The notes: generated from the sequence alone by a model not told the origin. A stretch of 64,000 bases of DNA from Lepidodermella squamata (GCA_047495785.1 JBLDXI010000016.1:248001-312000); one strand, 5' to 3'; shown: positions 1 through 59,478, counted from the first letter of the stretch. A program made the numbers and translations.

Positions 1-1063
1 GGGGCATTCATTGCGCTTTACTACGATCTTTCGGTTGGAAATCTCCACCGGCGTAGAGTGGATGTAACATGGTAACCGAGGCGTAGTCGAACGGTATTCC
101 AAAGTCATCGAAGTTAGTTTGGAGGTAGTTCGAAAAGCTAATTTTCGCAGAGTTTAAATAATGAAGCATCCATTCCTATGAGCTTGGCAGACTCACTAAG
201 AACCGGGATTCATTACGCTGATGAACGTATCTCGATCTGGTCGCGTATGCTCTAGAGGCTGCAAGAATTTGAAAAAATTCACCCAACGGATTGAAAACTG
301 ACGCAGGCCAACTTACAACGCCTATTCTGGTAGCAAAGGAGCGCTGAAAAGCCTGAATTGTAGGAAAGATTTAACCAAGATTTGTCGCATCGCAAGTTTT
401 TCTATCTTGAGTTGATTTTACAACCTGATACTGCGATACTCATGACTAACATGAACTCGGAACTTGAGATTACAGAATGATAGGAAGGCCCAATAAAAAG
501 CAGCTACCTCGGAGTTTTTTCTCGTAACAGACCTTTATCCCCGCATAAATGCTGCCACTTGTCTTTCCAGGCTCGAGGTACTGCTCTGTTCCACTGCATG
601 AAAATTGCAAATTCATCATAGACGTAGTAGTCATTATTTATAAGAAGCTCACACTTCCGGGACAGCTTCGGTAACTTCTAGATAATTCGCGTTCGAGCTG
701 TTCATAATCTGGAAATCGAAGCAAGTATGTTGCTTGTAGAAGTTGAGAGCGGCCTCGAATTCGACAATAAAGGCAGGTGCTATGAAGTAAAGGGGGAGAG
801 TGACACGTTTTGATGCAAAATAGCTGTTACTCATAAACTGTTTTATAAACTATCCCGAGAGGCAGCGGCCAGCAAATTGGTGCAGCAGCCTGCAGACTTG
901 GGCTTTCACCATCTCGACTGTTCTGAGATCCTCCACGCTGTGGCCGGCAATTGAATTAAGCTGTTTTCTTTTGTTTTCATCCAGTTATTCAGCAACTTAC
1001 ACTCATAACGATTGCCATGTTAATGCAAGCTATCGTCAGTGAGAGATCCCGCGAATAAAACAT
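1..1063 (-). pseudogene. Astacin-like pseudoprotease paralogue 1 (5' part, runs off the window); frameshifted
   Basis: Spliced reading: 21-aa first exon MFYSRDLSLTIACINMAIVMS|gtaag, then ...SLQAAAPICWPLPLGI..., zinc-motif region AFQRSFATRIGV|PLEHTRPDRD, then FGIPFDYASVTMLHPLY..PKD. After PKD it is 4 nt shorter than copy 2, giving TGA at 8-10. Confidence 0.75.
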
Positions 1064-2103
1064 TTCCAGAAGTGAAAATATATTCTAAGCTAGGGCAAAA
1101 ATCAACTCGTGACAAGGTTCGATCTTGGATCCTGGAGGAATTTTGAAGATTTTCCACTAAAACGAATGTCCACGAACGAAAATTTACAGGCGAAGTAACA
1201 TTAAAATTAGAAAATAGAGAACATGTAAAGGTCCTGGTAAGACGAGCCTGTTCTCGTTCGAAATAGGGCACAATTTGGCGATGCTGCTTTTACATAGATG
1301 TGTCGGTAGATTAATTTTCGGTTAATTTTAATTTTGAAAAGTTCTAATTGTGGTGATCGTTATCCCGAACGGTCTTTACCTTGAATGACAGGTAAAGTCG
1401 CTTCAGGAAGGAGAGTGGAATAAGCTCAGGTAACAAATCCGATACAATAGTGTCAAATGTTATCCTATTTCACGCTACGTTATTTATCGAGCTGGAAAAA
1501 ATTGGAAATATAAATTTCGGTGTAAATGTATTTGCGAATTTCATGTTTTTTGTTTAGCACTTGTTTTTATGCTTTTATGAAAATCGGCGCGCGTTCAGTC
1601 AGCTGAGCCCACGCGATCAGAATAACTGTGCGTATTGCGCGTCATTCATTTGGTGATTTCGAACAACTGGGCAAGAGCTTTTTTGATCGATGTTCTTCAA
1701 CATTGATAAGCACATCACATTGGCAGCATCAAATTTAAGATCAGACACACATTGCAAACGCAATAATAATTCGATCAAAGAAATATCAATATCAGCAACA
1801 TTTTTTCTCAAGCATTTCCTTGAAAACATTTTTTATTTTACAATACAATTTAGAGATACTCGAATCATTTTTCCAGTCTGATGAAGTTACAACCGAAGTG
1901 TACTGGTTACTGTTCAGGAGATTTTAAAAGCTCGAGGTGCAAATCTACGAATAGCTCATTTACCAACAGATGATACATCTCGCGGAAGTCCCCGAAGCCC
2001 AAGGTCCCTCGTTCAGAAAATTCAACTCGAGATCTTTATTTGGCAACATATATAACTTCTGAACGGCTGTTTATTTTCGATTTTAGCCATAGCATGTATC
2101 TAT

Positions 2104-2427: not shown

Positions 2428-5000
2428 CTACTTCATGTACAAAATGTTCGATTTTAAGCGTGCACTGAAATCTGACATTTAAAGTTAGAGCTTGAATGCG
2501 AAGGTGGCAATCGCCCACCGGCTTTTCAGAATTTCAGGATAGAATTTCAGGATGCTATGTTTACATGAGCTTAGTCAATTGATTTCTCAGACGTGATGAA
2601 TTGCAATAATCACAGTAAAATGAGACATGCAAGGTCGCGCAAATTCCTAAGTGTGTGAATGCTACGCTTAAGGGCAGATCCTGATGACTAGACTTCGATG
2701 GTGAAGGAAATTAGACTCTTTTTGAATTACTCTCGACTCAATAGGTGACGAACCATCGAATAAAGTCTCGCACTGAGATCTTATCAGCTTCATGGATTCA
2801 TGATTGTGAGAGTTGAGAAGTTTCCTCGTGGTATTATAAATGTTAATATGCTGAGTACGGGAGGGAAAGGGGGAAATGACCCAGCCCTCCCTTTTCGAAT
2901 TTCGAATTCGTTCGAATTTTGTGAACAAATTATGGCTCTTCTCGAGCATATATTCGGCTCAAAATTGTCGATTTTCCCCCTGACTATTGTATGTACCTGT
3001 TGAGAGTCATTCGCAGAACCTTACGTTCCGGGAATGAGTGCCGGGACATTGCAATAAGGAACAAAACGCCGAGACTCAACCTTCGGTTTTTTAACCATGA
3101 GGCCTCGGATCTTTTAGCAGAATAGTGCAAGGTCAAATCATTCTGACGCGAAACGAATATTTTAATGAGCAAATTGTCAACGCAAGAAATAACATAGATA
3201 TGTGTCGAACTCTGATATCTAATGAAAAGGAGAGAAAATCATAACCAATAAAGAAGATATAGTATTATTTTATATACACCGTTCTCATCATTAAGCAGAA
3301 GAAATGGTGTTTTCGTTGGCGCAGTATTTCCGGCTCATTTAATCAATCCCAAGCATAGATCAATGTTTTTGGCAAACGGGGTATACTTGTTGTACCGATT
3401 GACCTGGAAATTCATTGATGACATTGAGGAATTCGTGCGAAATCTTAATTATCCACTCACTTCAAGCTCGCCAGAATCGCACTTGCCGTCACATCTGATT
3501 CCCTTGCTGGCTGAATAGCACTTCCTGGCTGTCTGAAAAATATTGGACATTGAAAAGTTATAATTTATACTGTCTCTCATGAACAAACACCCACCGCTGT
3601 CCGACACTTGTCTTCGTAAACCCTGCCTTGACTCAGGAATGCAAATTCAGTGGCGTTGTTGCATTGGCGACGGCAATCTACGAATCGCTTGGTGGCTTTC
3701 GAGCCGCATCGAACGCGAATCTTATCGTCAGGTGTTGGATTAGTTACTGTCGAATACATACAATTAAATAATGATGGCTTTCTAAATCAAATCCCACCAT
3801 TGGAAACAGCAATCGGGATGTCACACGTTTCGGTTTGATTGCTGGCATAGTCTACGATGCAATAAGGACCGGTCAGCCTTGACTCGGGATTTCGGCAGAA
3901 ATTCAGCGATTCGTTGACCAATCCACGCGGAAATTTGACGTATTCGTTCAGATTATATCTAAATTCACCCGGATCAGGCCACGGCTTACATATCAGCCCA
4001 GACTTGGTCGTCGAAACCTTGCCCTCGTAGTCGTAACCGGTCGCCGTAAGTCGCAGCTCGGCCTTGTTATCAGTCGGGCAGGATCGAGCAACGAGTCTGA
4101 ATCCTTTGCCGGGGCTCTTTGAATTGGCTTTGAAGTGAATAACGGCTGTATTCCCACTAGTCTCGTAAATTCTGCCAGAGCTAACGCCGTAAGAGCAGAT
4201 TCGCAAGTAAGGCTTAGTGCCATCGGTCGGATCGCGAAATTCGACGTAGTCGAAGCACGATTCGGTCGTCGCTGACGAACCAGTATCCACTGTGTCAATT
4301 GAAATGCTAAATTAATATTCTCATCGTGCACATTAAAAAGTTCAAACAATAATATGAAATAATGAAATTATTAATCCTTATTTTTTTTGGGAGTGACAAT
4401 CGTCAATTGCAAAGAGCCTAATTTGTATCAATATTTTAAAATAAAAGCCCCTCACCTATTCCGACAGTAAGATTCGGTCTGCCATCAAAACCAAACGCAA
4501 TGCCAGGCTGAAAAAAATATTTCATTTTCGTTTTATTCAGCGTATAAATTGCACCTGGCCACTGATGATCCGCCACGAACATGAACTGCCAACAGGATAG
4601 TTGTTAGGATAGTTGGGCGATTCGATGATTTGCGAGACACAAGGCTGAAGATTGATGACGCCACCGCAAATTTCACCCGGGAATGGAGGCAAAGCTTCGC
4701 AAGTGGGACCGCCAAAGCCGGGTGGGCACTTGCAAATGCTGCAATTCTTAGGATCTCGATAGCCGCCGTATTTGCAGCTTGGAGCAGGGCCGTTGCATTG
4801 GGCTATGATATTACGAGTCGTTTCAAAGAGATTTCTCGTCTTTCTATCGTGTAAATCACTCACCCAAGCAGTCGTAGATCATGTTGAAGTATTTGATGTT
4901 ATTGAATGATGGCAGCGGGGCATTCGTGGCACCAATGTAGCGCAGGTCCTTCGGTAGGTATTCGTAACCATCTTCAAGTGGATGCAACATGGTTGCTGAG

Positions 5001-8000
5001 ACCTAACGGAACCTAGCAGCGGGTTTTCATCAGCACTGACTTCCACTCATCCTGGAAGTCTCATCATTTGTTATGGATTGTTATGGACCAATACTAGTTG
5101 GTAGAAACAAAAATTACATTTGCATCACCTTCCGTTGGCGTGCTGCCAACTTTTGCTGCCAAGTTCAACTTTTACACTGTAAAAAGGGTGCATCGATTTG
5201 GGACCCCATTTGTTATATCCGACAGCAGCACATAACAAACGTGAGAATTTGTTATATAACGTAACAAATGACGCTGATTGCGATGGTGCTTTTTATTTTA
5301 CCACCAGCATCACCTGGACAGGTGTGGATCGAAAAAACCAGGTATGGTGGCTTACCTGAGCAGGTAGGGTGCGTCCCATGACCTCGAGATAATTTTTTTC
5401 GGATTCTCCGTCGAAAATTACAGGTATTCCCCAAGTTTTTTGAATTTCTGATATACATAACTCACGAAATGAGAAATATAATGATCTTACACAGAGTTGC
5501 AATTTCCGTGGTCATTTGTTGATGTCAGTCAATAATGAGAGTTACTCGCTTGGAAGCGAAACTTGGATTCTTCAACATTGCCCCGTATGTCTAACAATGA
5601 GTGCACCAGGGTAAAAAATGATGCAGAATTCAACCGTGCTATTGTCAAACCAACAAAATTGATTGCTACGTGGTTAATTGATCACGTGACCTATTCGCTT
5701 TATCAAGTTTCTGATGGGTACGAATTGAATTATATTACCTTATCTGTTATAACTGTCAGCACATCATAAAAAACGTGGTATTTTGTCCTATATGGTAATA
5801 ATTGGCGCTGAGAACGCTGGTGATGTTTATTTTACTATCAGCACCTTCTGGACAGGTGAGGATTGCTAAGAACAGGTAAGATGTCTTCCAGCGAGCATCA
5901 TAGTGAGACTCTATTCTGAATTCATTTCAAGGCAATTTTATTGAATTTTATGAAATTGATGAAAGTTATAAGTTCTACTGTTGTTCTACATGTTGATCCG
6001 ATGTCCTGAAAGAAGCCGAGTGGACCTACATGTTTGTTTTGTTTCCATAACCGTCGTAGCCGAATTTCCGAATTTCCGAAATTGATGAGCAAGAAAAGTA
6101 AGAAACTCGAGGTGAATAATGTGAGTATAGGCATACATCTTTGAAATAGATATTTATTTATTTATTTATTTATGAGCATTAATATCCAAGGGATGTAGGA
6201 CAGCTCAGCTGAAAAAGAAGCATGATTAGTACAATTAGATTCGACGTGAAGAGGTCATTATGTAGATATCAACAAAGAAAGTTAGGAAATTAGGAAAAAG
6301 ACAATGACATGCATACCAGTATAAAAATATCGTATTTAGACTCAACAAGGAATTAGAAATTAATCATCAGTAACGGTATTTACAATTTCACCGCTTGCCT
6401 CGATGACGTCACAACCTTCCTCAGTGTTTGCAGTAGGTTCAGACAGTAAATAATGATAAGTTAGGTTCCGGCATTGATCCGCGCTGGTAGCTAAGCGAAT
6501 TTCGTTCGGCAAGCCATTCCAGAACGTGGCGCCACGGTATCGAAGGCATCGCATCGAAGTATCGGTCTTCGCGCGAGGGACAACCAGCAGGTTGTTCGAT
6601 GCATTTATGTTGACTTGCCTCCTTGTGACCCCAGCGGTTTTCTCTTGCAGTTTGAAGAACTCGGCTAAGGCAGCCGGTGCTTCGCCATTGATGCAGCGCC
6701 ATATCATGGTTGCCAGATGAACTTTCCTTTTACCATCAAGGTCTAGCCATTTTAGCTTTTTCCTCAGAGATTCGATGTCATCGTTTTCATTCGCATGACA
6801 AATTATGCGAATGGCTTTGTCCTGTCGTCGTTGAAGGCGCTCTAAGTTAGTTTTTGCCGCTTGGGCTAGGACGCTGTCACAGTACATTAGGTGACAGAAG
6901 ATGACACCATTAGCCATCAATTTGAGGGTTTTTCGATCAAGGAATTTAGCCGCAAATTTTAGAGCAAAGAGACCACCCCTGGTTTTGTTACCCACATGTT
7001 TGAGCTGTTCAGTGTCATAATCAGATATTAATTTTCGTATCAGAAATCAGAATAAACCATAGCACTTGCTGATCTTAAGTATTCCAAAATTTAAGAGTAT
7101 CAATAAACAAATTAAACAATGATTCCTCAAAGAAGGTAACGAATATTATTGACTTTCTCGCACGAAAAGGTCATATTAACAGAATAAAATATTATAGGTA
7201 ACAATAAAATCAACATCACCAACGTTTTCAGGGCTACTTTTTATCTTCTAGAATTAAAATTCCACATTTGTTACGTAGCGCTGTCAGTTAAAAAAATATC
7301 GTTCTCTAATTCAATTCAGACCCATTTTAAATTTGAATAGCCGGCTACGTATCACGTGGTCAATTATAACCGCCAAGCCGTCAATTATATTCGTTAGACA
7401 ATAGAGATGTTAATTTCTGCATCTTTTTTTACCCTAGTGCACTCATTAAAATGTGAAGTTGATGTAAAATAATCCAAGCTTTCGCTGCCAAGCAAGTAAT
7501 TTTCATTGCAAACTGCCACAACCGACATTGAAATTGCAACTTTAGTTAAACTCGCTTTTATTTCTCGAGTTATATGAATCGAAAGTTCGCAATACTTTGT
7601 GAAACATGGTAATTTTCGACGGAGAATCCGAAAAAAATTATCTCGAGGTCATGGGACGCACCCTACCTGCTCAGGTAAGCCACCATACCTGGTTTTTTCG
7701 ATCCACACCTGTCCAGGTGATGCTGGTGGTAAAATAAAAAGCACCATCGCAATCAGCGTCATTTGTTACGTTATATAACAAATTCTCACGTTTGTTATGT
7801 GCTGCTGTCGGATATAACAAATGGGGTCCCAAATCGATGCACCCTTTTTACAGTGTAAAAGTTGAACTTGGCAGCAAAAGTTGGCAGCACGCCAACGGAA
7901 GGTGATGCAAATGTAATTTTTGTTTCTATCAACTAGTATTGGTCTATAACAATCCATAACAAATGATGAGACTTCCAGGATGAGTGGAAGTCAGTGCTGA

Positions 8001-8029
8001 TGAAAACCCGCTGCCAAGTTCAAAGCGGT
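5001..8029. mobile_element. Non-autonomous long-TIR (foldback/MULE-like) DNA element with 8-bp TSD
   Basis: TTGCTGAG duplicated at 4993-5000 and 8030-8037. About 5015-5420 is a near-identical inverted copy of about 7610-8015, with diverged inverted similarity extending to about 5700/7340. It splits the astacin exon between codons ..ASA and TML.. Confidence 0.9.
6155..7022 (-). mobile_element. 5'-truncated non-LTR retrotransposon (CR1/L2-like RT C-terminus) nested in the TIR element
   Basis: ORF 6360-6995 has YCDSV..LQRRQDKAIRII..LKWLDL..RKVH..YRGATFWNGLP. (TAAA)n tail at about 6153-6172. AGATATT on both flanks (6148, 7023) is a probable TSD. Confidence 0.85.
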
Positions 8030-8461
8030 TTGCTGAGGCGAAGTCGAACGGTATCCCGAAGTCATTGAAGTTAACTTGCGTGTAGTTGGCGAAGCTTGAA
8101 AAACGCGAACAATAAGCCTAACTTATTGCGAGGGCTTTGAAGACTTACTGGGAGTAGATGTTCTTGATTTCAATGTAATTATCCCGATCAGGTCGGGTGT
8201 GCTCCAACGGCTGAAAATTTGGCAATTTCAAAAAAAAAACATACCAATCTGATTTCAACGACTTACAATGCCTAGAACGGTTGCTAACGACCGGTGAATG
8301 GCCTGTTGAATAAAACCGCAAGAAAAACTTTGTAGAAATTTTCTCAAATCAAGCTTGTGTTTCTAGAGAACAGTAAACGAGTAGATTGTTGTCGGTTTCA
8401 TTTAGATGTGACTTGGAATCCTGCAAGGTCCCCACCAAGTTTTGATTCTAGAGTTTATTAA

Positions 8462-8934
8462 CACTTTAACTGCCAAAAAATACTGCAAGGTCCGATATTA
8501 GGGTCCAAATCCTGGGTCTGTCAAAAAGTCTCTTTTCTCGGGCCAACGATACGTCGTAGAGCAAATGCCCGATGGCAAAGTCGGCGGTTCTTTTGTCACC
8601 GAATTCGGGGCGACAAGGTCTCAACAGGTCTTTGGAAATGACAGAGAAACAACGTCGAAGTTTTGGATTATAGCCAAGAATTGGACCAAATTATCAGACC
8701 CAGATTATGGCGCAACAATCGAAATTTCACTGTTTATACAAGTTGTTTTCTGTGCGTTCCTTGAAATCTTTTGCCCCAAATTTGGCGTCAAAAGAACCGA
8801 GTCATGACCTACACTTTTCCATCAGGAATTCTGCTCTACGACGCATCGTTGGCCCGAGAAAAAAAGACTTTTTGACAAACCCAGGATTTGGACCCTAATA
8901 TCGGACCTCGCAGTCTTTTTTGGCAGCTGAAGTG
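8462..8934. mobile_element. TTAA-flanked MITE (piggyBac-like target site), intronic
   Basis: TTAA|CACTTTAACTGCCAAAAAA ... TTTTTTGGCAGCTGAAGTG|TTAA, with inverted arms of about 150 bp. Confidence 0.85.
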
Positions 8935-11616
8935 TTAAAGTGTTAATTATACTAGCCTCTATTTTCACTCCCGCCATGTGAGCACCATTTCCAGGTGTCA
9001 AGAATTGATATGTTGACCTGTAAAATAATAGTTATATACGAGTGATTATGAGTGATTAGTTATTTTGCTCACTGATCAGCGTTTCTTTCTTTTACACTCA
9101 GGCTATCATTGGCTGTGCTGTTAACAAAATCGAAGCAAGTATTTTGCTTGTAGAAGTTGAGAGCGGCTTCAAATTCCACAGTGAAGGCAGGCGCTGGCGA
9201 GAAAGAGTGCAAAATCAAGTGAAATACGTTAAATCAGATATTGAAACTTACAAACTTCCTCGATGTAATTTATTCCGAGAGGTAGAGGCCAGCAAAAGGA
9301 GGCCGCAGCCTGGAGATTTGGGTTGTCATCATCGCCGTGATACTTGGACATGTATCTGTCATACATTGACTGTGCCTCATCGCGAGTCATACGTAACATT
9401 TCATTCGGAAGCATGTATTCTTCAAAAGGGATCTGTGATTACGAAAAGATTGTGAGACATTACACATGAAATATTATTAATGTCTGAAACAGTGAGGGCA
9501 GGGAGAATTCATCTTAGAATTCCATTCCCGTTTAGAATCCAATACCCCATCGGAGCCAAGACCCCTGAGTGTCGAATTCAAAGTTCGGGAAATTTATTTG
9601 AATTTACAGAAATTTAATTGAAAAAATCGGAAATTTTCGATGACTTTAGAAGTTTGGTTAGGTGTGGTTCATAACTTGGCTAACCTTGGTTTCACCAGCA
9701 TCTAATTTCTTCTGGTATTCCAGATTGTACATGATTTGACGAACTTCTTCCATTTCAGTTCTGTCGGGCTACACGGCAAATTACAGGCATGATTGAACCA
9801 CGGATTTATAAAGTGATGAAATCTTACATTCATGGCGATTTGCGGCACAAGGCAAGCCATTGCAAGCAAGAGAAGACGTAAATGTAACATTATGACCTAA
9901 TTCTATGAAAAGAGGATCATAAAGCGTCTCAAAATTTGAGATTCACACATAACTGAGGTTCAGAAGCTTATTCTGTTATCTGTATCTAGAATAAAGGCCA
10001 GCTGGCCAATATTTAGAACGGAAAGAAGAGAGAAACTAATAAAACCTGAGATGAGCAGCTGCAAAAACTGATACAGCCGAATCAACTTGTTTTTTTCAAG
10101 TTTGTCATGCCGGCAACAAAGCGATCCTATAAAAATTGCCAGGTTTTTGATGAACTAGTTAACGAAATAAGCTGTTAATAACATTTAACAGCACATTTAT
10201 GATATTTTGTTTTGTTGTTTTGCTGGCTAATAAAAAATCACGTGTATGGTTGTCCGTGATTTGGCACGCGACCACCTATACGTTTTCACTATTCTCATTC
10301 ATTTTTATTGAATGTTGAAAACATCGTTATTTCAAAAATCCTGATGGCCATTTGATCAACGTAAAATTTATGATTCGTTTGGAGAACATTCTTGTGAACA
10401 TCGGCTCGGGCTTACTATAAAATAATGCGTTGAATGATTCAATTTTACAAATATTTTAAATTCCAATTTTGAATTCAACACATGAAACTTTGATGAATGA
10501 TTTCTCAGCAACTAAGAATCGAATGGATGCCGTTTTTTGACGTACCCATCCACTATACCAAATTCAGAATTAAATGATTTTCAGATGCACCGATGCGCCT
10601 CGGCAATGGCCAGTGGCAATGGCGGAGCTAATTGAAACCTTTGCAGATTTGTTATTCAAAAATATAAATTTATTGAATCTATCAATGCAAGCTGCAATTA
10701 GAAACCAGGAATAAGCATCAAGGCTGCTCATTTGAAAGCCTATCACTAGTCGGCCTTTCGAAGTACTCTTCGCGACCAATCGATCCCACGGTAGTGCTCA
10801 GAATCCTGGAGTAATTACCGCGATAGTTAACTATCCTCTCGAAGTTTTCTTCTGGCGAATGATGGACGTTGCTATTTTGTTGATTTTCTTGTGCTGCCTC
10901 AGCTTTTACCGTAGAACTCTATAAATGTGTCAAGCGTAAAAAATCATCATATCACCATCATATCATTCTAAACTAACCAATACAGCGATGAAGATGAGAG
11001 ATAGATATTTCATGTTTTGACAACTTTATTATGCATTATGCGATTATAGTCAAACGAATAGACCGCAGCCATATATTAATTGATAGACATCAACACCTGC
11101 TCATACAAGTTCGAGCAGAGCGGGTTTATGCACTCTTGACGTCATTATATGCGGAGTGTGGACCTTTTATTCCTAATAGCAATGACGGAATGCCAAGACT
11201 ATGACCTCATCGACATTGTAGTTGCCTATTACGCCTGATATAATATTACTAAAGAAAAATTATTCATAATTTTATACTGATGCGATTTCGTTAGCAATTT
11301 GGTACAGACTGCGGCAACTAAGGCTTGACGTACGTAACGAGCTTCATGTTGGAAACAGAAGCTATAATGATGTCATCAGATCGGACCAGATCAGATCAGA
11401 TAAAAGTAGGTCAACTTGACCATCCGCAAGTGTCATTGTATGAAATGGACAGTGCAGTTTTGCATAAATGTCATACGTCATACCAGCGATTGTCGAGCAT
11501 TCATTATTCATCATTACATTGATATACATGCTGAATAATTGGACTGGGATGCACACACATATAGTACATATTTTTACGATAGCTGCATTTTACAAAATAT
11601 AGGCGATCATCACGAA

Positions 11617-14159: not shown

Positions 14160-14714
14160 TCACGCCGGAATAATATGATTGAGCAAAATTACGGAGGCTG
14201 CGAAAATTGTCACATAAGCCATCCAATGCTGATTGAGTTTGCTCGCAGAAGAAGCCACGCAGCAATTGTTCTTACAATACAACAACCTCGGGCAATTACT
14301 CGAATAGATGCACGTGTAGCACAGTGTTGTAGTCGATGTCGTGCTGGGCAGTGACGTCACACACAAATTTCCACCAACGTAGTAGGGTGCTGAAGTAGGG
14401 CAGGCACACGTTCCACTCGAGCACGTTGTATTGCCAGCACAATCGCCCTTAACAACGCATTGCGAGCCGTATTGAGCGCAGCCAGCACATCCGATGGGGC
14501 TGACACCACTTGGATAGCTTCCGGTGCAGGTTGATGAGTAGTAGTAGGGTAGATAAGTCGGGCATTGGCAATAGCCGAGCGTGCAGACCAGAACGCTGTC
14601 ACATTGACTGGTGGCTGAACAGTAGCCACCGTAGGCCACAGCTTCGACTGAATTTGCCAAGAATAAAACGATCAGGCAGCCGAGGAAGCATTTTAGAGTA
14701 GGCTGAGATTTCAT
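14160..14714 (-). CDS. Cys-rich EB-module-like surface protein, probably GPI-anchored
   Basis: Signal peptide, two YG..C.....C....C..G.C.CP...PYY modules, S/T linker, small CC module, hydrophobic C-tail after SSAS. Confidence 0.85.
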   Translation of the reverse strand: MKSQPTLKCFLGCLIVLFLANSVEAVAYGGYCSATSQCDSVLVCTLGYCQCPTYLPYYYSSTCTGSYPSGVSPIGCAGCAQYGSQCVVKGDCAGNTTCSSGTCACPTSAPYYVGGNLCVTSLPSTTSTTTLCYTCIYSSNCPRLLYCKNNCCVASSASKLNQHWMAYVTIFAASVILLNHIIPA

Positions 14715-23119: not shown

Positions 23120-24102
23120 ATGTTTAGCGAAATACACGTTGTTGATTTGTCAAAGGAACCGCAAATAGCGGCTAAGGAACTCTACCAATCTTTCACAACC
23201 AGCGGATTTGCCTATGTCGTTAACCATGGCGTACCGCAAGAACTTACCGACAAACTGGAGAAATTTGCCCACGAATATTTCGCCCTGCCAGAGGAGATTA
23301 AAATGCGATCGGCGAAGAAGCATTTCAACCATGAGAGCAACAACGTCTACCGCGGGTATTTCCCCCTCCAACTGAATGCCGACTCTTGGAAAGAAGGCTT
23401 TGAAATCGGCGACCAGGAGACAAACGAAACCTACAAGCCTATCTATCGCCGAGATTTGGTTTACTACGAAAAAAACACATGGCCAAATACTGGTAACCCT
23501 GATTGGGACGCTGAGTTCAAACAGGTGATGATTGAGAACTACAACGCGAGGTCTCAGCTCGGAATTCGGCTCATGCGGCTCGTCGCGATCGCCTTCAATC
23601 TACCCGAGGACTATTTCGACCGCTACTACAACCAACACATCGCAACTTTTCGAATCAGCACTACCCTTACAATGATAATGTCAACAAATCCACCTTAAGT
23701 TGTCTGGAGCATGTGGATTCAGTGCCGTTGACTATGCTATACCAGGACTCGTTCGGCGGTCTTCAGGTTCAGAATCCTAAGGGCGAATGGATTGACGCTC
23801 CTTTCATCCCTGGGTCATTTGTTATCAATGTTGGGAAAACTCTGGAGAAATGGTCTGGTATGAAGCTGAAGGCGACTTTGCACCGAGTTTTGGGTGTTAA
23901 GGGCGACCGCTATTCGATTGCGATGTTTTTCACGCCGAATCCTAATATATTGATCGAGCCCTTTCAAGGTAACGATGATGGAGTTCCGTTCGAGCCGTTC
24001 ACCTATGGGGAGTTTGGCTACAAGGTTTTCATGCAGTATGCTGAGTACCAAGGCCAACTTGGGTTATTGGCTGATAATGAAAAAATCGATGGAAACGTTT
24101 GA
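23120..24102 (+). CDS. 2-oxoglutarate/Fe(II) dioxygenase (DIOX_N + 2OG-FeII_Oxy, IPNS-like family); intronless; one frameshift near 23657
   Basis: IHVVDLS..GFAYVVNHGV..YRGY..KEGF..NTWP. After the shift: HYP..EHVDS..LTMLYQD..GGLQV..W..VINVG..LHRV..RYS (HxD..H triad and RxS motif intact). Confidence 0.85.
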
Positions 24103-37173: not shown

Positions 37174-38668
37174 ATGCAGTATTTAGCCACCCTAGTAGTT
37201 GTAGTAGCAACTTTCACAGCTCACATCGCTGCGCAAAGCACAGCACGCAATGCTACATCGAAACTCTTAGGATCGCCGTGCAAAGTCGCGCAGGGTAGCA
37301 ATGCTGGTTGTGGCAATAACGCGAATTGCACCTCTATTTCAATCGGGACGAACCGAACTGGTCTAGGCGAGTGTTGGTGCAAATCGAACGTCTACCGCCA
37401 ACCAGCCGCGCTACCTCAGTGGGCTCAACCGGCCGCGCAGCGAACCTTGGGAAATCGATTTTGGTCCGATTGTCTCTCGATTCTTCGAGTTGGCGATGCT
37501 TGCCCGATTGAGACTCCGCCAGATGGTGACGATCATGGGGCTAACGTTTTGCTGGCTGATGGTGCTCAATGTGGCTATGACGGCTATGTCGAATGCAAAC
37601 CAGGCCGCGTTCGGAAAAGCGAGCTGGAATGCGTCCCTGAGGGTCAACTAGACGCAGCTTCGTTCGGCGAAGCTTGTTCCGATAGATCTTGCGATTCCTC
37701 AAAAGGGCTCCAGTGCAAGAATGATCCCAACGGCGGAGATCCGTCCTGTCAATGTTCGTCTGGGACTTGGCGAGATGGCAGTTGCTCCGGAACGCGTGAG
37801 TTACACCAATTTCCTACTCAACATTTGTCCTAAATTGTTTCTTAAACTCAGCTTCTGACGGAGACACTTGCTACTACGATTCGGACTGTAACTCTCAGGC
37901 TAGAGACTCAAGCGGCCTGACTGTTCCACTTGTGTGCGCGGCTAGTGCCTCAGACTACAACTCAGGTTCAGGGACTTGCCGTTGCCCGACTGAATCTTCC
38001 GGGCTGGGTTATGCTATTCTGGCCCCGTACGTTGTCCCCAACGCCAAAGTTGCGAAGCCGAAGAATGGTAAAGCCGGCGGAGAATTGGTCATTGTTCCCG
38101 TTAGATTCAACACAACAAAGGAGAGAGTCCCACAAGTCGCTTCATGGTGCCTTGGTAAGTAGGAATTTCTGAAACTCGATCAGCTAAATGATAGAAAATT
38201 AATAAATTTGCAGATGGAGCTGTCTATAAATTCATCCCTCAAAATTATTTGGCCGCCTGCGATTTGGACCCTTACACCGTTGATAACGGCCAATTCCGCT
38301 ACTGCATCAACGAACTGGTCTGCCTTCACTTCCCGGTAGCTGATGACGATATCTCAACCGCCGGTCGTTGCGTGCCTCTCGATCCTAAGGACGGACGCTG
38401 GGTTGGCCAGGACAAATACGCCCGAACAAGCAGTGGCAGCAGCAGCAGCAGCGGTAGAAGCGCTGATACTGTTCGAGGAATTAGCAGTGACTACAGCAGT
38501 GGAAGCAGCGGCAGCGGCTCGTCGAGACGTTCATCAAATTCATCCAACTACACGACTTCCTACGACTACTCCACCACTCAATACTCGATTAGAGCATCAG
38601 CTGGAATGCTGAATCAAAACACCCTCTTCACCTTTTTCTCGTTCTTCTTTGTTTCGATGAAGTTGTAA
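37174..38668 (+). CDS. Cys-rich EB-like secreted protein with Ser-rich stalk and GPI-like tail; three exons
   Basis: Signal MQYLATLVVVVATFTAHIAA, G.CWC, FW.DC..IL..G..C, SFGEAC...CD...L.C, Ser/Gly stalk, hydrophobic end LFTFFSFFFVSMKL*. Confidence 0.82.
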
Positions 38669-38900: not shown

Positions 38901-40136
38901 ATGTTCAGATTTCTAGCGATCCTCTCGCTTTTCGTATGCTACTGTGCCGCCCAAAACCGGGGGCCTAAAATGATAGGCCAGGGCTGTCGGCTTACGAACT
39001 CAACGCAATGTGGCCGCAATACGAAATGCATCGCGATTCCTAACTGCAGCAAATCGACAGGCTTCGGCGTTTGCTGGTGCAACCCAGGCTACGTCCAACC
39101 TACCAGCCTTTACCCGTATCAACGGCTGTCATTGATGGACGAAATGGGCGATGCGTTTTGGACGGATTGCGTACCCATTCTCAAATTGGGCGCTTCTTGC
39201 ACTCCGAATAACCAAAGCCAAGTCTACCCTGAATTCGCATCTTGCACGGTAAATGGGACGGTTGAGTGTAACTACGGTTACAAAGTTGACGCTGGTGGCT
39301 GCATTCGGGAGAACGCGGCAAGGCGGTCGTTTGGTGAAGAGTGCACCTTGGATGTTCAGTGCGATCAGGCGCGTGATCTGAAGTGCCTACCTGGAATCAA
39401 GGATATCAAGCCAACAAAATGTGGGTGCGTCACTGGGCAATGGAAGGATGGAAAATGCTCACAGGGTAAATTTTAGGAAATCCTCCTTAAACTCTAAAAA
39501 CTTTCGATTCTTCAGCGAAATTATTCGAAAACTGCACCAGGGACTCGGACTGTAACCTTCAGAGCTACCAACACGGCAAATCAATGCCTAGATGCATGAA
39601 AGAAATTAGGAGGAACAATACAGTTTGCACATGTGGCTCGCCCTTGAGTTTCACCTCGGTTCCATACATCTACCCTACTACGAAAATCTACCTGAATGTC
39701 ACTTCGAATTCGGACGACCACATTTGGACGCGAACTGTGCCTGTGAGTATGCGGCTTAACCTGGACAATTCTGAGAATTTGCGAGTTCGGAATTGGTGCA
39801 TAGATATAGGTAATTTTTCATCTTTGACCTTGATCACTCTTTTGACCTAGTTTACGGGACAGGTTACGATGATTTCGATACTATGTCACGGCAGCAGGGT
39901 CAGGCGTGTACTTTGGATCTTCCAAGAGCAGCTCCTGAGTTACCAATCGATAGGACAGTGAAGGTTTGTGGTCAGAACTTGATTTGCCACTATTGCCCTA
40001 CAAGCGAGGATTACGCCGAGGAGATGGGTCGATGTGTTAGCTACTCATGGACTATGCCAGCTAAAGATTCTTATACGTAAGATTTTTTACCCTTTTTACT
40101 CTGCTAATCTCATTGTCGCCATATTTCAGGTTTTAA
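38901..40136 (+). CDS. Tandem paralogue of the 37174 gene lacking stalk and anchor; four exons
   Basis: Signal MFRFLAILSLFVCYCAA, same Cys scaffold and intron positions. Last exon inferred as ..KDSYT|F*. TATAAA at about 38863. Confidence 0.78.
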
Positions 40137-40247: not shown

Positions 40248-42730
40248 TCACAGCAGAAGAATTCGTCCAAGGGCTTCGACGAACCCATTCAGAACAGTTT
40301 CGCTGAGCCTTGAATTGCCTTTGATCAGAAAATCAATCGCTTTTTGGGCCACAAATTCCCAGGCGATCTCGCGATCAGGGAATTGAAGGCGGAATGCTGA
40401 GATAGCTGCAATTGTCGCAAGTTCTTGATCACTTGTTTTCAGCAGCTCTGAAATTCCAGCCTCAGTTGATGCCTTCGAGGCCAAGATATTTCGGAAGTTT
40501 TCCAAGGCAGGTAAAGCCGGTGAATTTATTGCTTGAACCAGGGCCGAATCCAGCTTCCAGGAGCCTTCAAAGTTCTGGAGGCGAACCAACTCATCAAACT
40601 TGCTTTGAGCTCGGATGCCGATACTTGCCCTATCAGTACCGAAATTCGGATCTTGGCCGTCGTTCCTAGCATAGCATACTCCATTTCCTACAGGTCTACC
40701 GCTTGAAGTATCAACCGCAACTAAAGCAGTGAACTCGCATAGCACCCCAGAATCGAGTGATAAGGCGATTGCAGTTTGTTTTGCCTGTTCGTTTTTAAGA
40801 ATGTTATACTCGTCAACAAGTTCCAAAAGGCGAGCTTTTGCTGCTAAGCGGTGAAGAGGCATAGGGTCTAACGGGGCTGAAACAACCTCTCCAGGGCAGT
40901 TGAAGCTCATACTTGAGTCCAGAGTTTTATCCTCAACTGTTCCAGATAGTCGGACATTACCAGCTATAGTCATGTCATCACCTTGTCGGTAGATCATAGC
41001 AAATTGGTTCATTCTACGGCCTGACAGTGAGGATAAGGGGATGTTTGTTGGCGTCACAGGTCCAGTCCACGCTGGAGCGTCCACATTCCATCTCACGTTG
41101 ACATTATCGATACTTGGCCCCATAGCAAAGCTCAGAAGACCCATGACCTTATCCTGCAGCCTGTAGAGGCTCGAACTCGTAACTCGGTCTGTTGCCCCGT
41201 TCGAGGCTCTGGCTACTCCTTCGAGCAGAGCGCTATCCGCTCCATTGCCGATGCCGAGAGAGAATACTTTGGTGTTCGCAGCGTTTTTCCCAACTAGGGC
41301 GATGACTTCATCGGTATTACTGACTTCGCCATCGGTTAGCAAGAAGATGTATCGGCGATTTGGCGGGCTGATTGGTTTGCTGTAGATGTATTCAAGTGGT
41401 GGTATCATTTCGGTTCCGCCCCAAATGTCGGCTCTCATGCGAGGGATTTCGTCCATGGCTGTTTGGTAGCTTGCTTGGTTCAATGGCACAGCCCTAAAGA
41501 CAAATTTTGATTAAAGGAAAGGAAGTGAACCAAATTACTTACCCTCCCTCAAACAAAGGCACAAAGCCCCTTGTGATATTCGCGAATCCTCCAAATCCTA
41601 CCACGTTGAACCGGCTATTCGCTGGGAGACTTTTGATGAAAAGCACCAAAGCTTGTTTAGCAGCCTCAATCCTCTGCCCATTGTCTTCATCCGTCATAGA
41701 CCGAGATCTATCTAGGACAAACCAGTATTCATCCGAATAGGACGTATTCGATAGGACTTTCGCCATAAAGGAATCAAACCAAAGAGCTGCCACTGAATAC
41801 TGATTCCAGTTTAAACCAGAACTTGAAGCAGGACCTGGTACCCCTGGCTCGATATAAACAGCCGGCTGTAAACATGAGGCGATATCAACTAAGAGGGAAA
41901 AGTCATGGTCTTGGACGTAAGGATTGATCAAGTTGAAGGTAGCCTTCTGTCGGCCTCTGTTGATTTGAACGTCCAGGCGATCTCTAGTAGATTCAGCCCC
42001 AATCGACGTGATTTGCCCAACACCGCCCAGATCGACCTTCCCCTTGAAGGTTAGCTGGTAGTTCTGCTCCGAGTAACCAACCCAAGATGACCTCAGGTGG
42101 AATTGCTGTTTCATGAGGTAAGGATCGCGAAGTCCTGCGCCGGTCACGTGACGAGGGCAAAGAACTATAGGAATTGTGAATGACAATACTCCCGTCCTTC
42201 TATCGCGTTCAACTGGCTGGGCGTAGCCGATGGTTACTTTCACAACCTGGTTGGACGGTAGATTGCCAATCAAAAGCCGATACACTGCTGCATCGTCCAT
42301 TTGGTTCTCGAGTAGGAAAGATCTCATTCCTGAGTCTCGGGCGTTCCTAAGATACGTTCGTAGAACAAATGGGGTGATAAGGACGAAAAGCTTACTGATA
42401 CAGTTGTTCGGCCTGATTTCTCTCCATAACTCGTCCAGCAATGATTCTTCCCGATACATTAGCCTCTAGTTTGTAAACGGCCGCCGTAGCATCGATTGGG
42501 AAAACAAACTCACTCTCGACAGATTGGGGCTGCTTGTTGATGTACGTCAACTCAGCCATAACCCCAACAGCCCAACCTTTCACATCTAGATTGATGGTAA
42601 CGGATTGAAGAGGCAGGGGAAGGACATTGCCATTTGAAAGCCGGCGTAGCAAACCAGCATACCAAGCATTGGGCCCACCTTCAGCCTGAACAAGTGGCAA
42701 GATCGCAATTAAGATTGCTGCAACTCTCAT
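40248..42730 (-). CDS. VIT-vWA protein (VWA5A/BCSC-1-like) with an N-terminal signal peptide; three exons
   Basis: VIT: LTYIN..VESEFVFPID..AVY..IGNLP. vWA: FVLDRSRSM, FNVVGFG, GGTE, FLLTDGEV, FSLGIG. C-terminal LHRLAAK, FTALVAV, LQNFEGSW, WEFVAQKA. Confidence 0.9.
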
Positions 42731-48209: not shown

Positions 48210-50010
48210 ATGGCCGCTGAGATCTACAAGATAACCGGCGAGGAGATTATAAGAAATGACCCAGATAAGGACAAATCGCTGATTCCCGTCGATTTGGCTG
48301 ATTTTTGCGCCGGCGGCGAGGGTAAAGTCATCGGCTTGTACTTCTCCGCGCATTGGTGTGGTCCGTGCCGCGAATTTACGCCCAAGTTGGCCAAGTTCTA
48401 TAAGAAAGTCAACGAGGATGCTGGTTCGCAGATTTTTGAAATTATCTACGTCAGCTGCGATCGCGATGATAAGACGTTTTACAACTACTACTCGACCATG
48501 CCTTGGCTGGCTATGCCTTTTGGAATCGAAGAAGCTTCAGAGGTGAGTCTTTATTCTTTAAAATTCGAAAAAGAAACCTTCAAATTTTTGTTTAAATGTT
48601 TAGAAAAATTAGCAGAAATGGGAAATTCTGCTAGACAAATCGGGCACGAAAAATTATCGATTGATGTTTATAACTTTTCAGGGGAATTTTTGGGTAAAAT
48701 TTTAAATTGGGAATCTCCCCACTTCCAGTGGCTCTCGGATTTTATTTGGCTTGGAACCTTTCTCTAACGAGATATAATTAAAATGATTGATTCTGATTTA
48801 ACCTTGGAAACATTCCCGTGAAACTAAACGGCTTGGATACCACGAAAACTGACATTTTCTGAAGAAAAGCAGCTTCGAGGATAGTTTCCTGTACCTTGAG
48901 CCTCTTAAGAAATAAAAAATCCGAATTGATTATGGGCCTTTGGTTAATTTTGTCCCTGCAAAGTTGGACGATAATTATATTTTGATATTTAAAGAAGGTC
49001 CATGATTAATCCTATTGTTATCCTGCTCGATAAAATAATGTGTAGTTCCTTCTTTCATTGATTCTTTCATTGGCGAATTCCGGACTTTTCATCGTTTGCG
49101 ACTGAAGCCTGATTTTGAACTTCGGCGAATTCCGAATCCTATCAACCGATAAATCAAAGTCGATGAGTAATATCTTACCCCTCATCAGAGTTCATCAACT
49201 AATAATTGTCGTAGCAGTATGCTCCTTTTTGCGTGGGAGAGGGCGGAGGGCGGATATGTCGGTGCAATTTGAGACTCGCCAAGCATTAAATCCGATTTCT
49301 TTAGGAAAAACCATCAACCCACTTGTATTATTTATTGCGTATTATAGCCCATTTTGTAGACGGCTTGGAAAAATTTTGAGATTTTCGCGTGTTGCGTCTC
49401 ATTTTCAGGTTTCAAGGCTACCTGGCCGGAATATTTCGAGATCTCAAGCCAAATGAAAGAATCGATTTGGAGCGAAAATTCTCGAATTTATGAATATAAT
49501 AGCTGGTTTCCTATTAAGTTGGATTTAATTAAACTGATGTCAATAGGCTTAAGATTCATGACCTCGCATTTTCTTTGCCGCCATTAATTCTCCCAAAATA
49601 TTGCCCCATATTTTCGTCGTGCAGCCATGATGACCTAAATACTGTCGAGTATTAGGCCAATTATGGAAAAGGGGTCAAGCAGCTCAAGGGTCATAGCACT
49701 TGTAAATTGTAATTCGAAAATTTCTTAATTTTCTTCCATTTTCCTGAATTTTGAGTTTTTATTCGAGCATTTTGTGGCACGAACTTTTAGGATCCAGCTG
49801 GAAAATAATTTTTTGATTTGTGTTTTATTATAGGCGACTGCCAAATTCGCTATCCGGTCTATTCCGGCCCTGGTTTTACTCGACGCTGCCACCGGCAAAG
49901 AAATCACCCGCCACGGCCGGGCTGAGGTTGAATGCGACCCGGATGGCACGAAATTTCCCTACCACAACAGCACACCGCCAAAAGTGTCCAGCTTCTCCTG
50001 CGCTATGTAG
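48210..50010 (+). CDS. Nucleoredoxin/tryparedoxin-like thioredoxin 1 (WCGPC); two exons
   Basis: [38 protein letters not shown]|1.3-kb intron|..IRSIPALVLLD..ITRHGR..FPY...FSCAM*. Confidence 0.9.
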
Positions 50011-54924: not shown

Positions 54925-55127
54925 TATGTGTATTTCAGCAAAGACACTTTGTCAGATAAAGGGAGTCCCAACGGCTAAGACAAAGAAGACGTGGAAACTA
55001 AACAATGAACCGAGTCACGCTTCCCAGAATGAGACACGCTAAATCTGCTGCGCACTTCGCATTGGCAGAAAAATTCCAAAAAATTCGTCCCAAGTCGTTT
55101 TACTATAAATTCAAGAATTGGGACAAC

Positions 55128-56048: not shown

Positions 56049-59000
56049 ATGATGTCATCTTATTATCCTTTATTGATCATTCTCGGCGTGATCGCTCAAA
56101 ATGCATCGAGCGTAAGATATCTCATTGATCAAACTTTTAATATTTGCTATGAAACCAACAAATTCCCCTTGTTTGAATGGAGCCTTGTTCGGAACAGCCA
56201 GAGAAAAAAAGGTAAGAGTTTCCTGTTCTGTGCCGTACAAACTTTGGCCACTGCCTGTGCCAGTTTATTTCGACCCGAACTGCAGTGACTTACCTTGTTC
56301 ACCTCTTCACGCGTGTGATCGCAAATTTCATTCCCTTCAAAAGGTGATGAATTGAGAGCGGCAATATTGGCTGAGCTTGATGTGTACAAGCAGCAAACTT
56401 GCCTCGATTACGTACTTATTACAAACGACACGCATCCGACTGGCTCTCTGTAGATTGTTGGGGACATATTGTTAGTTATATTTTCGAAGAATCAAGTTTC
56501 TGATTTTGACCACCTTTACAGCGGCTCGTCAACGTCCGCACTACCGGGCCCGGACGCGGGTTTTGGAACTTATGGTCATTATATGGGGGTGAGTTGAACT
56601 CGGTCTTAACTGCTTCTTAACTTATGCTTTCAGTGTGCGAGTTTTAGGAGGGGATGGGGGATCATCCCTCCCAGACAATAAGATGAGAATTTATCCTACT
56701 GTTTCGTTCATTTTGATAGGTTTCGGAGCGCGTTTTAGTGGAAAATCTTCAAAATTCTCGTTTCGCTCGCTTTTTAGTTAAAATAGCATCCAAGATCCAA
56801 GATCGCACCCTGTATGCTTTGATCAATCGAAATTTTATTCCCTTCACAGAATTTTAGACGAAATTTGGCTGTGACTCTGGGCGTGGTAAGTGCGGATGTG
56901 CTCACTTTCTCAAAGATAAAAACTTGGATCTATTTCGCAGCCAATGGATATGCTCCGTCCTGATCGGGACAACTATCTTTATGGGATAAAGATGGTAGGG
57001 TAAGTGATTTGCTTGCCTCGCTGATATAATGAAATGCTTGGTTATTCCGCATTAGAGTCTTCTGGTACAAAATCCCTGGGCTCACCAGTGACAATGGCGT
57101 GCCATTTGATTTTTCCTCGGTTACACTGACGCACCCGCTTGAAGATAATGGCAATTTCTTCCCGAAAGACTGGCGGGGATGTCTGTACTTGCACAAACGA
57201 TTCTGCACAAAAGCAGTTGCACAAATGCAGTTGCACAAAATATTTTGCACAAACTCCATTTTTCAAGCGGAATCAAGTTTAATAAGAAAATTGAAAATTG
57301 AATATGCAGTTGCAAATGCCCACCCGGCTTCGGTGGTCCAACTTGCGAGGCATCTCCTCCATTTCCAGGCGAAACTTGCGGGGGTGTCATCGATCTCCAG
57401 CCATGTGTCTCGCAAGTCATCGAATCACCAAACTATCCGAACGGTTATCCCATGAACAGCACGTGTTCTTGGCAGATAATCAGTAGCCAGGTGAGTTCAC
57501 AATAATATTGCCTTATAATGCGAAAACCACACGCAATTTTTACTGTTAAATGTGGGTTTCGCCAGATAAATTTCACTGTTTCCCACCCAATCTAGGATTT
57601 TCATATAATGAATCCTTACTGTCGAAAATTGAGTGGTCAGTTAATACTTTAGCATTTCCCCTAATCGTTACCATGAAATCTTTTCCTTACCTGGTAACCG
57701 TGGGTTTTTCACCGCTAGGCGACCCGAAAGCGATCTGAAAGCGCAAAAACCTTGGAAAAATGCGCCCACTGGCGTCTTTAGCGGCGTTTCTGCGAGGAAC
57801 AAAATTGGTTCACCCAAAGTTTTTTCACATTCCCTAGCCGAGCACATGGAGAGCTTATTAGGGAAGTAAGAAATAGCCAGTTAATATGGAGGTCATCCAC
57901 GGCTTTTCAATCTTTTCCCTCCCGGCTTGAAAATTGAGAAAAAAGCGAAAATTGTGTGTTTTTAGTCGCTCTTATCTCGAAAACACCCATGGTTGCACCA
58001 TAGCTTTTTGTAGTCAAATAGGAGAAGGCACTAGGAGGAAGGTTTTAACAGGGAAAACAGCAAGAATCTCCCCAACTTATCCACGACTTTTTCGTCCTGA
58101 TTAGCACTCACTACGTCACACCCAACACCTCGAAAATGCATGGCCTCGCGTATTTTGGGGCAAGAAAGAACATGGATTCAACCACAGTTTTTTCGCGTCC
58201 TTTAGTAGAGCACGACAAGATCTTACTCAGGAAGTAAGATTTTACGTGAATCCCCTCTCTGGATTTTCAGATCAGGAGCCAATTTCATTTCTCTAAAGCT
58301 AACTATGGAATAATCGCTTATTCCTCATTGTATTATGTAATGATATTTCAATTTCAGCCCGGAATAGTGTTTGGCTTCGACGGTAGGCCTGATCTAACCG
58401 TTGGCACGAGTGAGTGACACTTTTACATTCTTAAAATAATCATAATTTCCATTAAACTTATACAGTCGAAAGTGGCTATTCGATATATAACGACTCCTGC
58501 TTCGATTACGTCGAATTTCGGGACCCAACAGATGGCACCAAACCTTACCTTCGCTTTTGTTCCTACGGCGTTAGCTCAGGACGGATCTACGAGACCGCTG
58601 GCAATGCTGTTGTCCTGCACTTTAAAGCTACTTCGAACAAACCCGGAAAAGGCTTCCCACTTGTCGCTCGATCTTGCGCGACTGATAACAAGACTGAACT
58701 GAGACTGACAGCGACTGGCTACGACTACGAAGGCACGGTTTCAGTAACAACATCTGGCGAGGCGTGCCAAACGTGGCCCGTTGTTAAGGAAACTTCTGAA
58801 TATGATGTGTACAGCCAAGGTCCGTTCATTTCGACCTGGTATCACAACTTCCTATACCCTCGCGGATTGCGAAACGAATCGATGAATTACTGCCGAAATC
58901 CTGAATCTCGCGCAACTGGCCCGTATTGCTTCACGGACCTTGCAACAAATGAAACCGAGCCTTGTGACATTCCTATAGCTGTTTCTTTCGGTAAGACGAT

Positions 59001-59478
59001 ATCAGTGAAATTCGTCAGTTACAATTCTATTTGTCAATTTTCCAGTCAACAACACGAATTCGACTGCTGGCAGTACGACAACACCGAACAATGCAACGAC
59101 AATCAATCCAAATATCCGCGTCCGGTGTGGATCGATCGCCACGAAGCGTTTCACAGCTTGCCGCCGTCAGTGCAACAGCGCCACTGAATTCACATTCCTG
59201 AGTCATGGCACAGTATTCGATGACAAGTGTCCCACTGCGGTTAATTTGAGTACCGAAATGTTTCGAGCGTCGATATTGTTTTGTTTGATTTTGGTTTTCA
59301 GACTGCGAGAAAGTGTTCTACGCCCAGCAAGGTTACCAGATGTGATAGCAAGTGCGCTGATGGTGAGACCGCTGATGGTGAGACATTTCTATTTCGTCTG
59401 TATTACCAGGTCGAACGATACAACAAGTACTTTCCGTTCGCCAAAAACATTGACCTGTGCTTGGGATTGATCAAGTGA
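56049..59478 (+). pseudogene. Astacin-like(dead)-EGF-CUB-kringle-Cys-repeat paralogue 5, inverted relative to the others; internally deleted
   Basis: Signal exon MMSSYYPLLIILGVIAQNASS|, KLWPLPVPV, QTCLDY, NFRRNLAVTLGV|PMDMLRPDRD, GVPFDFSSVTLTHPLE..PKDWR, then a TGCACAAA repeat (about 57177-57305) replacing sequence up to CKCPPGFGG. CUB, kringle NYCRNPE. Same end IDLCLGLIK* as paralogue 2. Confidence 0.82.

Follow-up and report, generated by a model that had tools for sequence, protein, structure and literature searches.

What becomes of an astacin fold once its zinc site has gone, and can a protein that carries it still be kept by selection? The question is raised by a 64,000-nucleotide stretch of the Lepidodermella squamata genome (GCA_047495785.1 JBLDXI010000016.1:248001-312000; hereafter the window, with positions counted from its first letter), which contains five astacin-like loci, copies 1-4 on the minus strand and copy 5 on the plus strand. 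We consider it probable that these form a tandem cluster of five genes or gene relics for secreted, non-catalytic astacin homologues, which most likely serve as binding or scaffold proteins. An initial annotation made from the sequence alone had placed five pseudo-astacin copies here, and a six-frame motif search recovered every peptide it quoted where it had located them:

Copy 1, minus strand: RSFATRIGV at 317-343 and PLEHTRPDRD at 229-258.
Copy 2, minus strand: RSLATVLGI around 8270-8296 and PLEHTRPDRD at 8181-8210.
Copy 3, minus strand: RKIGYVLGLTYELRRPDRG at 27912-27968.
Copy 4, minus strand: as the RKIGYVLGLTYELRRPDRG of copy 3 but with D at the end, at 34430-34486.
Copy 5, plus strand: RNLAVTLGV at 56859-56885 and PMDMLRPDRD at 56944-56973.

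Where astacins (MEROPS M12A) have HExxHxxGxxHE, all five copies read R-x-x-x-x-x-x-G-x-x-x-(E/D). If the invariant Gly of HExxHxxGxxH is taken as position 0, Arg stands at -7, the place of the first His, in 5/5 copies. In copies 1 to 5, the catalytic Glu position is occupied by S, S, K, K and N, the second His position by T, T, Y, Y and V, and the third by L, L, Y, Y and M. The Met-turn SxMHY is replaced by SVTML, SATML, SLFNV (twice) and SVTLT, and the Tyr zinc ligand that it supplies is gone in all. The loss of the three His ligands and the catalytic Glu, the recurrent Arg, the retention of G and RPDR and each of the Met-turn replacements had been proposed by the initial annotation, and all hold across the five copies. 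Astacin catalysis needs HExxHxxGxxH plus Tyr (PMC9848320). Because these metal-site residues have been lost, the encoded proteins are predicted to be unable to act as zinc endopeptidases.

Comparison of the window with itself, together with the reading frames, divides the loci into subfamily A (copies 1, 2 and 5) and subfamily B (copies 3 and 4), and in both much of the remaining astacin signature survives. The structural RPDRD is found throughout, as RPDRG in copy 3, and the family-specific Glu at +4 is present in 4/5 copies and Asp in copy 5. The Cys pair equivalent to C42/C198 of crayfish astacin, which links the two subdomains, is retained (TCLRF ... LYNCF in copy 4); the second astacin pair is present in copy 2 and absent from subfamily B. 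Pfam scores on exon pieces lie just above threshold for Astacin (PF01400; 27.8 bits for copy 3 and 22.6 bits for copy 4, cut-off 22.5) and for CUB (PF00431; 22-25 bits against a cut-off of 21.4), whose domain is split across three or four exons. A profile built from eight astacin domains gives copy 4 a score of 67 bits over positions 12-189. Searching the window by tblastn with the finished models yielded no sixth member of the family.

Copy 4 is demonstrably a working gene, with an open frame, canonical splicing, a transcript and purifying selection, and is the only such copy among the five. Its model is as follows:

32424-35158, minus strand: copy 4, the intact 14-exon gene of subfamily B, encoding 671 amino acids, drawn from frames, splice sites and cDNA contigs.
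34882-35158, 34689-34821, 34545-34632, 34392-34498 (motif), 34119-34333, 33821-34068 and 33711-33768, minus strand: exons 1-7.
33590-33659, 33138-33538, 32936-33063, 32806-32886, 32684-32752, 32547-32630 and 32424-32480, minus strand: exons 8-14.

The frame runs uninterrupted for 2,016 nt and 13/13 introns are GT-AG. Its product begins with a hydrophobic signal peptide and a short pro-region, followed by the astacin-like domain without zinc ligands and one EGF domain. Next come a CUB domain that is complete after splicing (about 115 continuous residues, with four CUB cysteines), a kringle-like domain (33139-33420) and, last, about 150 residues of Cys-rich tail. We infer that the protein is secreted, given its hydrophobic N-terminus and domains of extracellular type.

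Expression was read from contigs of two public runs (X1 and X2) aligned to 32000-35500. Contigs from X1 match at 100% and skip 9/13 copy 4 introns exactly, with CT..AC on the plus strand corresponding to GT..AG on the gene strand. Seven of these nine introns were already in the model drawn from frames and canonical splice sites; the exon at 32684-32752 and the donor at 32547 were set by the X1 cDNA. A tenth junction is indicated at 34392, where a loose end of 13 letters agrees with the first letters of the following exon. Depth in X1 is zero outside 32351-35158, and a SMART cDNA oligo forms a loose end at 35145. The contigs of X2 extend over exons, introns and flanks alike without joints, and this run is therefore read as DNA. 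One further joint, at 33759-33907 (GG..GT, skipping 147 bases with 24-nt sides), occurs in both X1 and X2; its reading as a splice was dropped and it probably comes from a paralogue or allele contig.

The closest relative of copy 4 is copy 3, with which it shares 89% amino-acid identity and 85-88% DNA identity, and whose 14 exons have the same lengths:

24638-28647, minus strand: copy 3 (subfamily B), 14 exons, all splice sites GT-AG.
28371-28647, 28177-28309, 28033-28120, 27874-27980 (motif), 27608-27822, 27309-27556 and 27198-27255, minus strand: exons 1-7.
27077-27146, 25510-25910, 25309-25436, 25179-25259, 25057-25125, 24768-24851 and 24638-24694, minus strand: exons 8-14.
27133-27135, minus strand: in-frame TGA where copy 4 has TGC, the codon of a conserved CUB cysteine (NVN*MNF in copy 3 vs NVNCMNY in copy 4).

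The intron after the TGA-bearing exon also contains a 1.1-kb insertion. The ratio of non-synonymous to synonymous substitution (dN/dS) between copies 3 and 4, a comparison proposed by the initial annotation, comes to 0.27 over 2,016 aligned coding bases (dS 0.22, dN 0.06; Fisher p = 5e-16), well below 1. In an alignment of 1,876 bases the differences fall 39/38/96 across the three codon positions, an excess at the third, and the astacin-like domain by itself gives 0.16. The introns are 82% identical with many indels, whereas the exons have none. This low ratio, together with the indel-free exons, therefore indicates that the pair evolved under purifying selection. Upstream of the TGA the ratio is 0.27 and downstream 0.28; because it is equal before and after the stop, the nonsense change is recent or not fixed.

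Subfamily A is organized differently. In it an intron after LG[VI] splits the motif, and the kringle of copies 2 and 5 is a true one; subfamily B has the motif within one exon and a short, divergent kringle-like domain. Exons of copies 2 and 5 are 65-80% identical as DNA. Over 107 residues the astacin domains of these two old and very divergent subfamilies show an identity of about 31%; they are not mutual best matches, and copy 2 is closer to several active astacins than to copy 4. The proposal that catalysis was lost before the family diverged is thus supported within each subfamily; across A and B it is not, given this distance and the recurrence of Arg in unrelated pseudo-astacins. The domain order is shared by both subfamilies: signal peptide, pro-region, astacin-like, EGF, CUB, kringle or kringle-like and a Cys-rich tail, with copy 1 cut by the window edge.

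The three A loci were resolved into the following parts:

1-960, minus strand: copy 1, N-terminal and astacin-like part only; the gene extends past the window start.
317-352, minus strand: copy 1 motif exon, AFQRSFATRIGV.
About 50-85, minus strand: copy 1 Met-turn region, FDYASVTMLHP.
3580-9432, minus strand: copy 2, with astacin-like, EGF, CUB and kringle domains and Cys-rich tail.
9252-9432, 9096-9193, 8957-9017, 8267-8362 (motif), 8149-8210, and 8030-8094 joined to 4864-4992, minus strand: copy 2 astacin-like exons.
4540-4878, minus strand: copy 2 EGF and N-terminal part of CUB.
3790-4311, minus strand: copy 2 C-terminal part of CUB and kringle (kringle 3802-4095).
3580-3786, minus strand: copy 2 tail.
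5001-8029: 3,029-bp insertion in a copy 2 coding exon, between FDFAS and ATMLHP, from self-blastn and reading of the junctions.
56049-59250 (approximate), plus strand: copy 5, degenerate; a candidate signal-peptide exon starts at 56049.
56850-56885 and 56944-56973, plus strand: copy 5 motif exons.
57306-57493, plus strand: copy 5 C-terminal half of EGF and N-terminal part of CUB.
58456-59184, plus strand: copy 5 C-terminal part of CUB and kringle (kringle 58660-58986).
About 59099-59250, plus strand: copy 5 tail.
57171-57305, plus strand: copy 5 lesion, between FFPKD and CKCPPGF, from comparison with copy 2.

Copy 1 gives a weak Pfam Astacin match on 652-849. An in-frame TAA lies shortly upstream of its motif exon, the phases at its first intron do not match, and no intact model could be built for the part of this copy inside the window. 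The copy 2 insertion contains two arms in inverted orientation, each about 830 bp long (5009-5834 and 7205-8021, 84% identical). An 8-bp direct target duplication, CTCAGCAA, lies on either side of it (8030-8037 and 4993-5000). The boundaries of the insertion are not splice sites, and the flanks are in frame across the duplication, with the same peptide uninterrupted in copies 1 and 5. The insertion may be an uncharacterized transposon of the foldback or terminal-inverted-repeat type; it contains an open reading frame (ORF) of 228 codons (6363-7046, minus strand) with no Pfam match. The 'WCSHGG' exon of copy 2 is followed by a GC donor, not GT. A separate element, a palindrome of about 440 bp resembling a miniature inverted-repeat transposable element and one of the short repeats that recur among the copies, occupies an intron of the same copy.

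Copy 5 lacks the last part of the astacin domain as well as the first three EGF cysteines, which take up about 50 codons plus an intron in copy 2, and degenerate TGCACAAA-type repeats stand at 57171-57305 in place of the coding stretch. The lesion also brings a change of frame and an in-frame TGA at 57299-57301, and the donor near 56445 has a phase mismatch. In copies 1, 2 and 5 no in-frame junction could be made between the phase-1 donor of the 'GC.S.G' exon (GT in 1 and 5, GC in 2) and the motif exon; this was not counted as a lesion.

Past constraint can nevertheless be read from copies 2 and 5. Over 256 codons of EGF, CUB, kringle and tail, the proportion of synonymous differences (pS) is 0.64, near saturation, while dN is 0.16, giving a dN/dS of about 0.11. 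Because this ratio is so low despite near-saturated synonymous sites, both copies were functional for most of their separate history. From the values for the two pairs it follows that the dead fold has probably been kept by selection and that the lesions are recent.

How far the kringle assignment holds differs between the subfamilies. Pfam Kringle (PF00051) scores 51 bits in copy 2 and 44 bits in copy 5 (cut-off 34.3), in each case after EGF-CUB. A PDB sequence search with the copy 2 domain finds plasminogen at E 2.4e-34, with the kringles of HGF, prothrombin and ROR also strong. As read from their sequences, the kringles of copies 2 and 5 do without the outer C1-C80 disulfide. Copies 3 and 4 give no Pfam kringle match at E 0.1. 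Even so, the best PDB sequence matches of the copy 4 domain are kringles (HGF, E 5e-4; ROR1, E 0.045). It is 33-36% identical to those of copies 2 and 5, and the DYEG, G..C..W, PRG and CR columns are invariant. An AlphaFold2 model of the copy 4 piece reached a mean predicted local distance difference test score of 51 from a 4-row alignment, and was too poor to be used. The kringle architecture ascribed to the whole family is therefore borne out by Pfam in copies 2 and 5, is best described as kringle-like in copies 3 and 4, and in copy 1 would lie beyond the window edge.

The metal site of these proteins is lost, with Arg for the first His and without the catalytic Glu, the second and third His and the Met-turn Tyr, while the residues holding the fold together (RPDR(D), Glu +4 and the Cys pair) are kept. 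We propose that the old substrate cleft, together with the CUB and kringle modules, would hold partners instead of cutting them. The cluster as a whole probably evolves by birth and death: copy 4 is live, and copies 2, 3 and 5, long constrained, now bear recent disabling lesions.

Several points weigh against this reading. At least three of the five loci (copies 2, 3 and 5) are disabled in this assembly, and given these broken loci the cluster may be losing function in this lineage. That the fold is retained, we infer from sequence conservation and Pfam matches. Subfamily A has His at -8 and +5, and a shifted metal site is conceivable there. The expression evidence concerns copy 4 alone and comes from one run, taken to be RNA because of its splicing and cDNA adaptor. 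The pseudo-astacin family seen by the initial annotation is real, with one demonstrably live gene, copy 4, which is intact, spliced and transcribed; with copies 2, 3 and 5 disabled, the picture of five equivalent paralogues does not stand.

The most durable alternative, although an unlikely one, is that the proteins regulate active astacins, as decoys or antagonists that compete for their substrates, propeptide-processing enzymes or inhibitors. Pseudoenzymes often regulate active relatives (PMC11266112), and the strongest constraint between copies 3 and 4 falls in the astacin-like domain (0.16, as above), which suggests that the cleft side is still in use. However, about 2.9 substitutions per site separate these copies from any active astacin, which makes a conserved cleft specificity unlikely, and the FxGD pro-motif differs between them (FYGG in copy 3, FYGD in copy 4). 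A broader proposal, by analogy, is somewhat more doubtful again: the dead-astacin-EGF-CUB-kringle proteins might be secreted recognition molecules or ligands that belong to a large family with fast turnover, diversified by birth and death, in which cleft and kringle are reused for binding; innate immunity and contacts with prey, hosts or microbes are examples of where they might act. If true, such reuse would resemble the combination of kringles and a dead serine-protease domain in HGF.

It is very improbable that all five loci are decaying pseudogenes and the copy 4 transcript noise. Disabling lesions in three or more of the five loci would fit that account, as would expression evidence that consists of assembled contigs of one run. 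Against it stand the 2,016-nt open frame of copy 4, with its 14 exons and canonical splice sites used as predicted; the ratio of 0.27 (p = 5e-16) between copies 3 and 4, their indel-free exons beside indel-rich introns and their third-position excess; and the ratio of about 0.11 between copies 2 and 5 at near-saturated synonymous sites. Plain pseudogenes would be unexpressed, with dN/dS near 1; instead copy 4 is transcribed and the ratio is well below 1 in both subfamilies. That the copies are still metalloproteases through displaced ligands such as His -8, Glu +4 and His +5 of subfamily A is hardly credible: His does flank the old motif in copies 1 and 2 (IHRS...PLEH), but copies 3 and 4, which alone form a pair with an intact member, have none in FAIRKIGYVLGLTYELRRPDRD, a general-base Glu beside a ligand is absent from every copy, the Met-turn Tyr is lost in all, and astacin catalysis requires HExxHxxGxxH and Tyr (PMC9848320). 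Secreted, non-catalytic binding or scaffold proteins thus remain the account we favour.

Several further features were noted in the window; Rfam gave no match. Short repeats common to the introns or flanks of several copies lie at 8490-8935 (minus), 56640-56700 (plus), 26990-27030 (minus), 1100-1200 (minus) and 56720-56800 (plus). A GGGGATGGGGGATCATCC unit recurs in introns of copies 3 and 5, and a GTTTTAGTGGAAAATCTTCAAAATTC unit upstream of copy 1 and directly before the copy 5 motif exon. The other features are:

29308-30664, plus strand: in the interval from copy 3 to copy 4, a pair of neighbouring ORFs that differ in frame, with P-element/THAP9-type transposase domains (TNP-like RNase H N and C, and a GTP-binding insertion domain).
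14163-14714, minus strand: intron-poor ORF for a predicted secreted Cys-rich protein, with an EB module (PF01683, 32.9 bits).
37036-37830, plus strand: intron-poor ORF, likewise for a predicted secreted Cys-rich protein.
38901-39473, plus strand: a third such ORF, with a weak EB match (19.9 bits); the EB modules near the family are a hint of nematode-like content.
40251-42459, minus strand: two long VWA-domain exons (VWA_2/VWA_3 matches) with an inter-alpha-trypsin-inhibitor or VWA5A-type look.
23120-23695, plus strand: 2-oxoglutarate/Fe(II) dioxygenase N-terminal domain (DIOX_N, 70 bits).
48210-48764, plus strand: nucleoredoxin-like ORF with a thioredoxin fold; its best public matches, in protists, plants, a spider and rotifers, are 40-60% identical.

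To place the family, 260 residues of copy 3 were searched with HMMER against 1.84 billion representative proteins, a library that does not hold this genome's own proteins. Nothing exceeded 33% identity over most of the query, higher identities were confined to stretches of 35-120 residues, those above 44% (up to 59%) to stretches of 35-85, and the best E value was 5.5e-13; the library therefore contains no close relative. The 243-residue CUB-kringle exon of copy 5 had zero matches among proteins in its length range. The named matches are nematode NAS-type astacins and mollusc or annelid 'nas-like' astacins of astacin-(EGF)-CUB order, the best NAS-type ones coming from Halicephalobus, Acrobeloides, Trichinella, Cylicocyclus, Mytilus and Liolophura. 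With the nematode-type astacins (the NAS-33 to NAS-38 group, and the nas-36-like proteins of nematodes and spiralians) the family shares the order signal peptide, pro-region, astacin, EGF and CUB, and also the EGF type, CxxGGYxxPxxCxxCxCPxGxxGxxC. NAS astacins keep HExxHxxGxxHE and SxMHY, whereas the five copies here have lost both; identity to them is 31-44%.

A full astacin domain is present in 89 matches; the zinc motif is degenerate in 16 of them, and in one more, P0145, it is complete except for the second His. Owenia fusiformis CAH1788069.1 and CAH1774698.1, Parastrongyloides trichosuri A0A0N4ZJQ7 and the unnamed ENA/Logan proteins P0160 and P0047 are pseudo-astacins with such a degenerate motif and with RPDR kept. 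Arg, which is one transition from His, occupies the first His position in 5/16 (Owenia CAH1788069.1, Parastrongyloides A0A0N4ZJQ7 and three unnamed proteins, of which P0117 and P0160 have identical astacin domains), and several of the database pseudo-astacins combine it with an EGF-CUB tail, as here. They differ in being no more than distantly related and in having no kringle, a domain found in 0/171 relatives fetched. A quick tree gives at least four origins of the dead state, with copies 3 and 4 alone on their branch of about 2.9 substitutions per site.

The initial annotation had not recognized the order astacin-EGF-CUB-kringle. We found no description in the searchable literature of a dead astacin with an EGF-CUB-kringle order. 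No astacin pseudoenzyme is known to have been characterized, and none appears in a 2024 review devoted to inactive metallopeptidases (PMC11266112). The pairing of astacin with kringle does have a precedent. Gomis-Ruth and Stocker 2023, whose survey took only sequences with an intact zinc motif, list kringle among astacin accessory domains and tabulate S-PRO-CD-CLEC-KRING for Dimorphilus gyrociliatus A0A7I8VBN4 and Mytilus coruscus A0A6J8CIB2. Like the family described here, these join an astacin domain and a kringle in one secreted protein; going by the tabulated descriptions, their CD-CLEC-KRING order sets them apart from CD-EGF-CUB-KRING. Neither dead astacins nor astacin-kringle combinations are therefore unprecedented.

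The nearest parallels in mechanism come from elsewhere. HGF, which joins kringles to a dead serine-protease domain, acts as a receptor ligand. The pseudo-peptidase ADAMs (ADAM11, 22 and 23; M12B), secreted or surface proteins, have a protease fold without its catalytic residues and act by binding (PMC11266112). ADAMs and HGF/MSP belong to other protease families and have other architectures; the likeness is one of mechanism only. Pseudo-peptidases of the ADAM and carboxypeptidase families proved to be important binding and scaffolding proteins, and an intact, transcribed member with purifying selection on its dead domain offers an entry point to a post-catalytic role of the astacin fold, in a family which shows that rapid expansion and decay are possible for pseudo-astacins.

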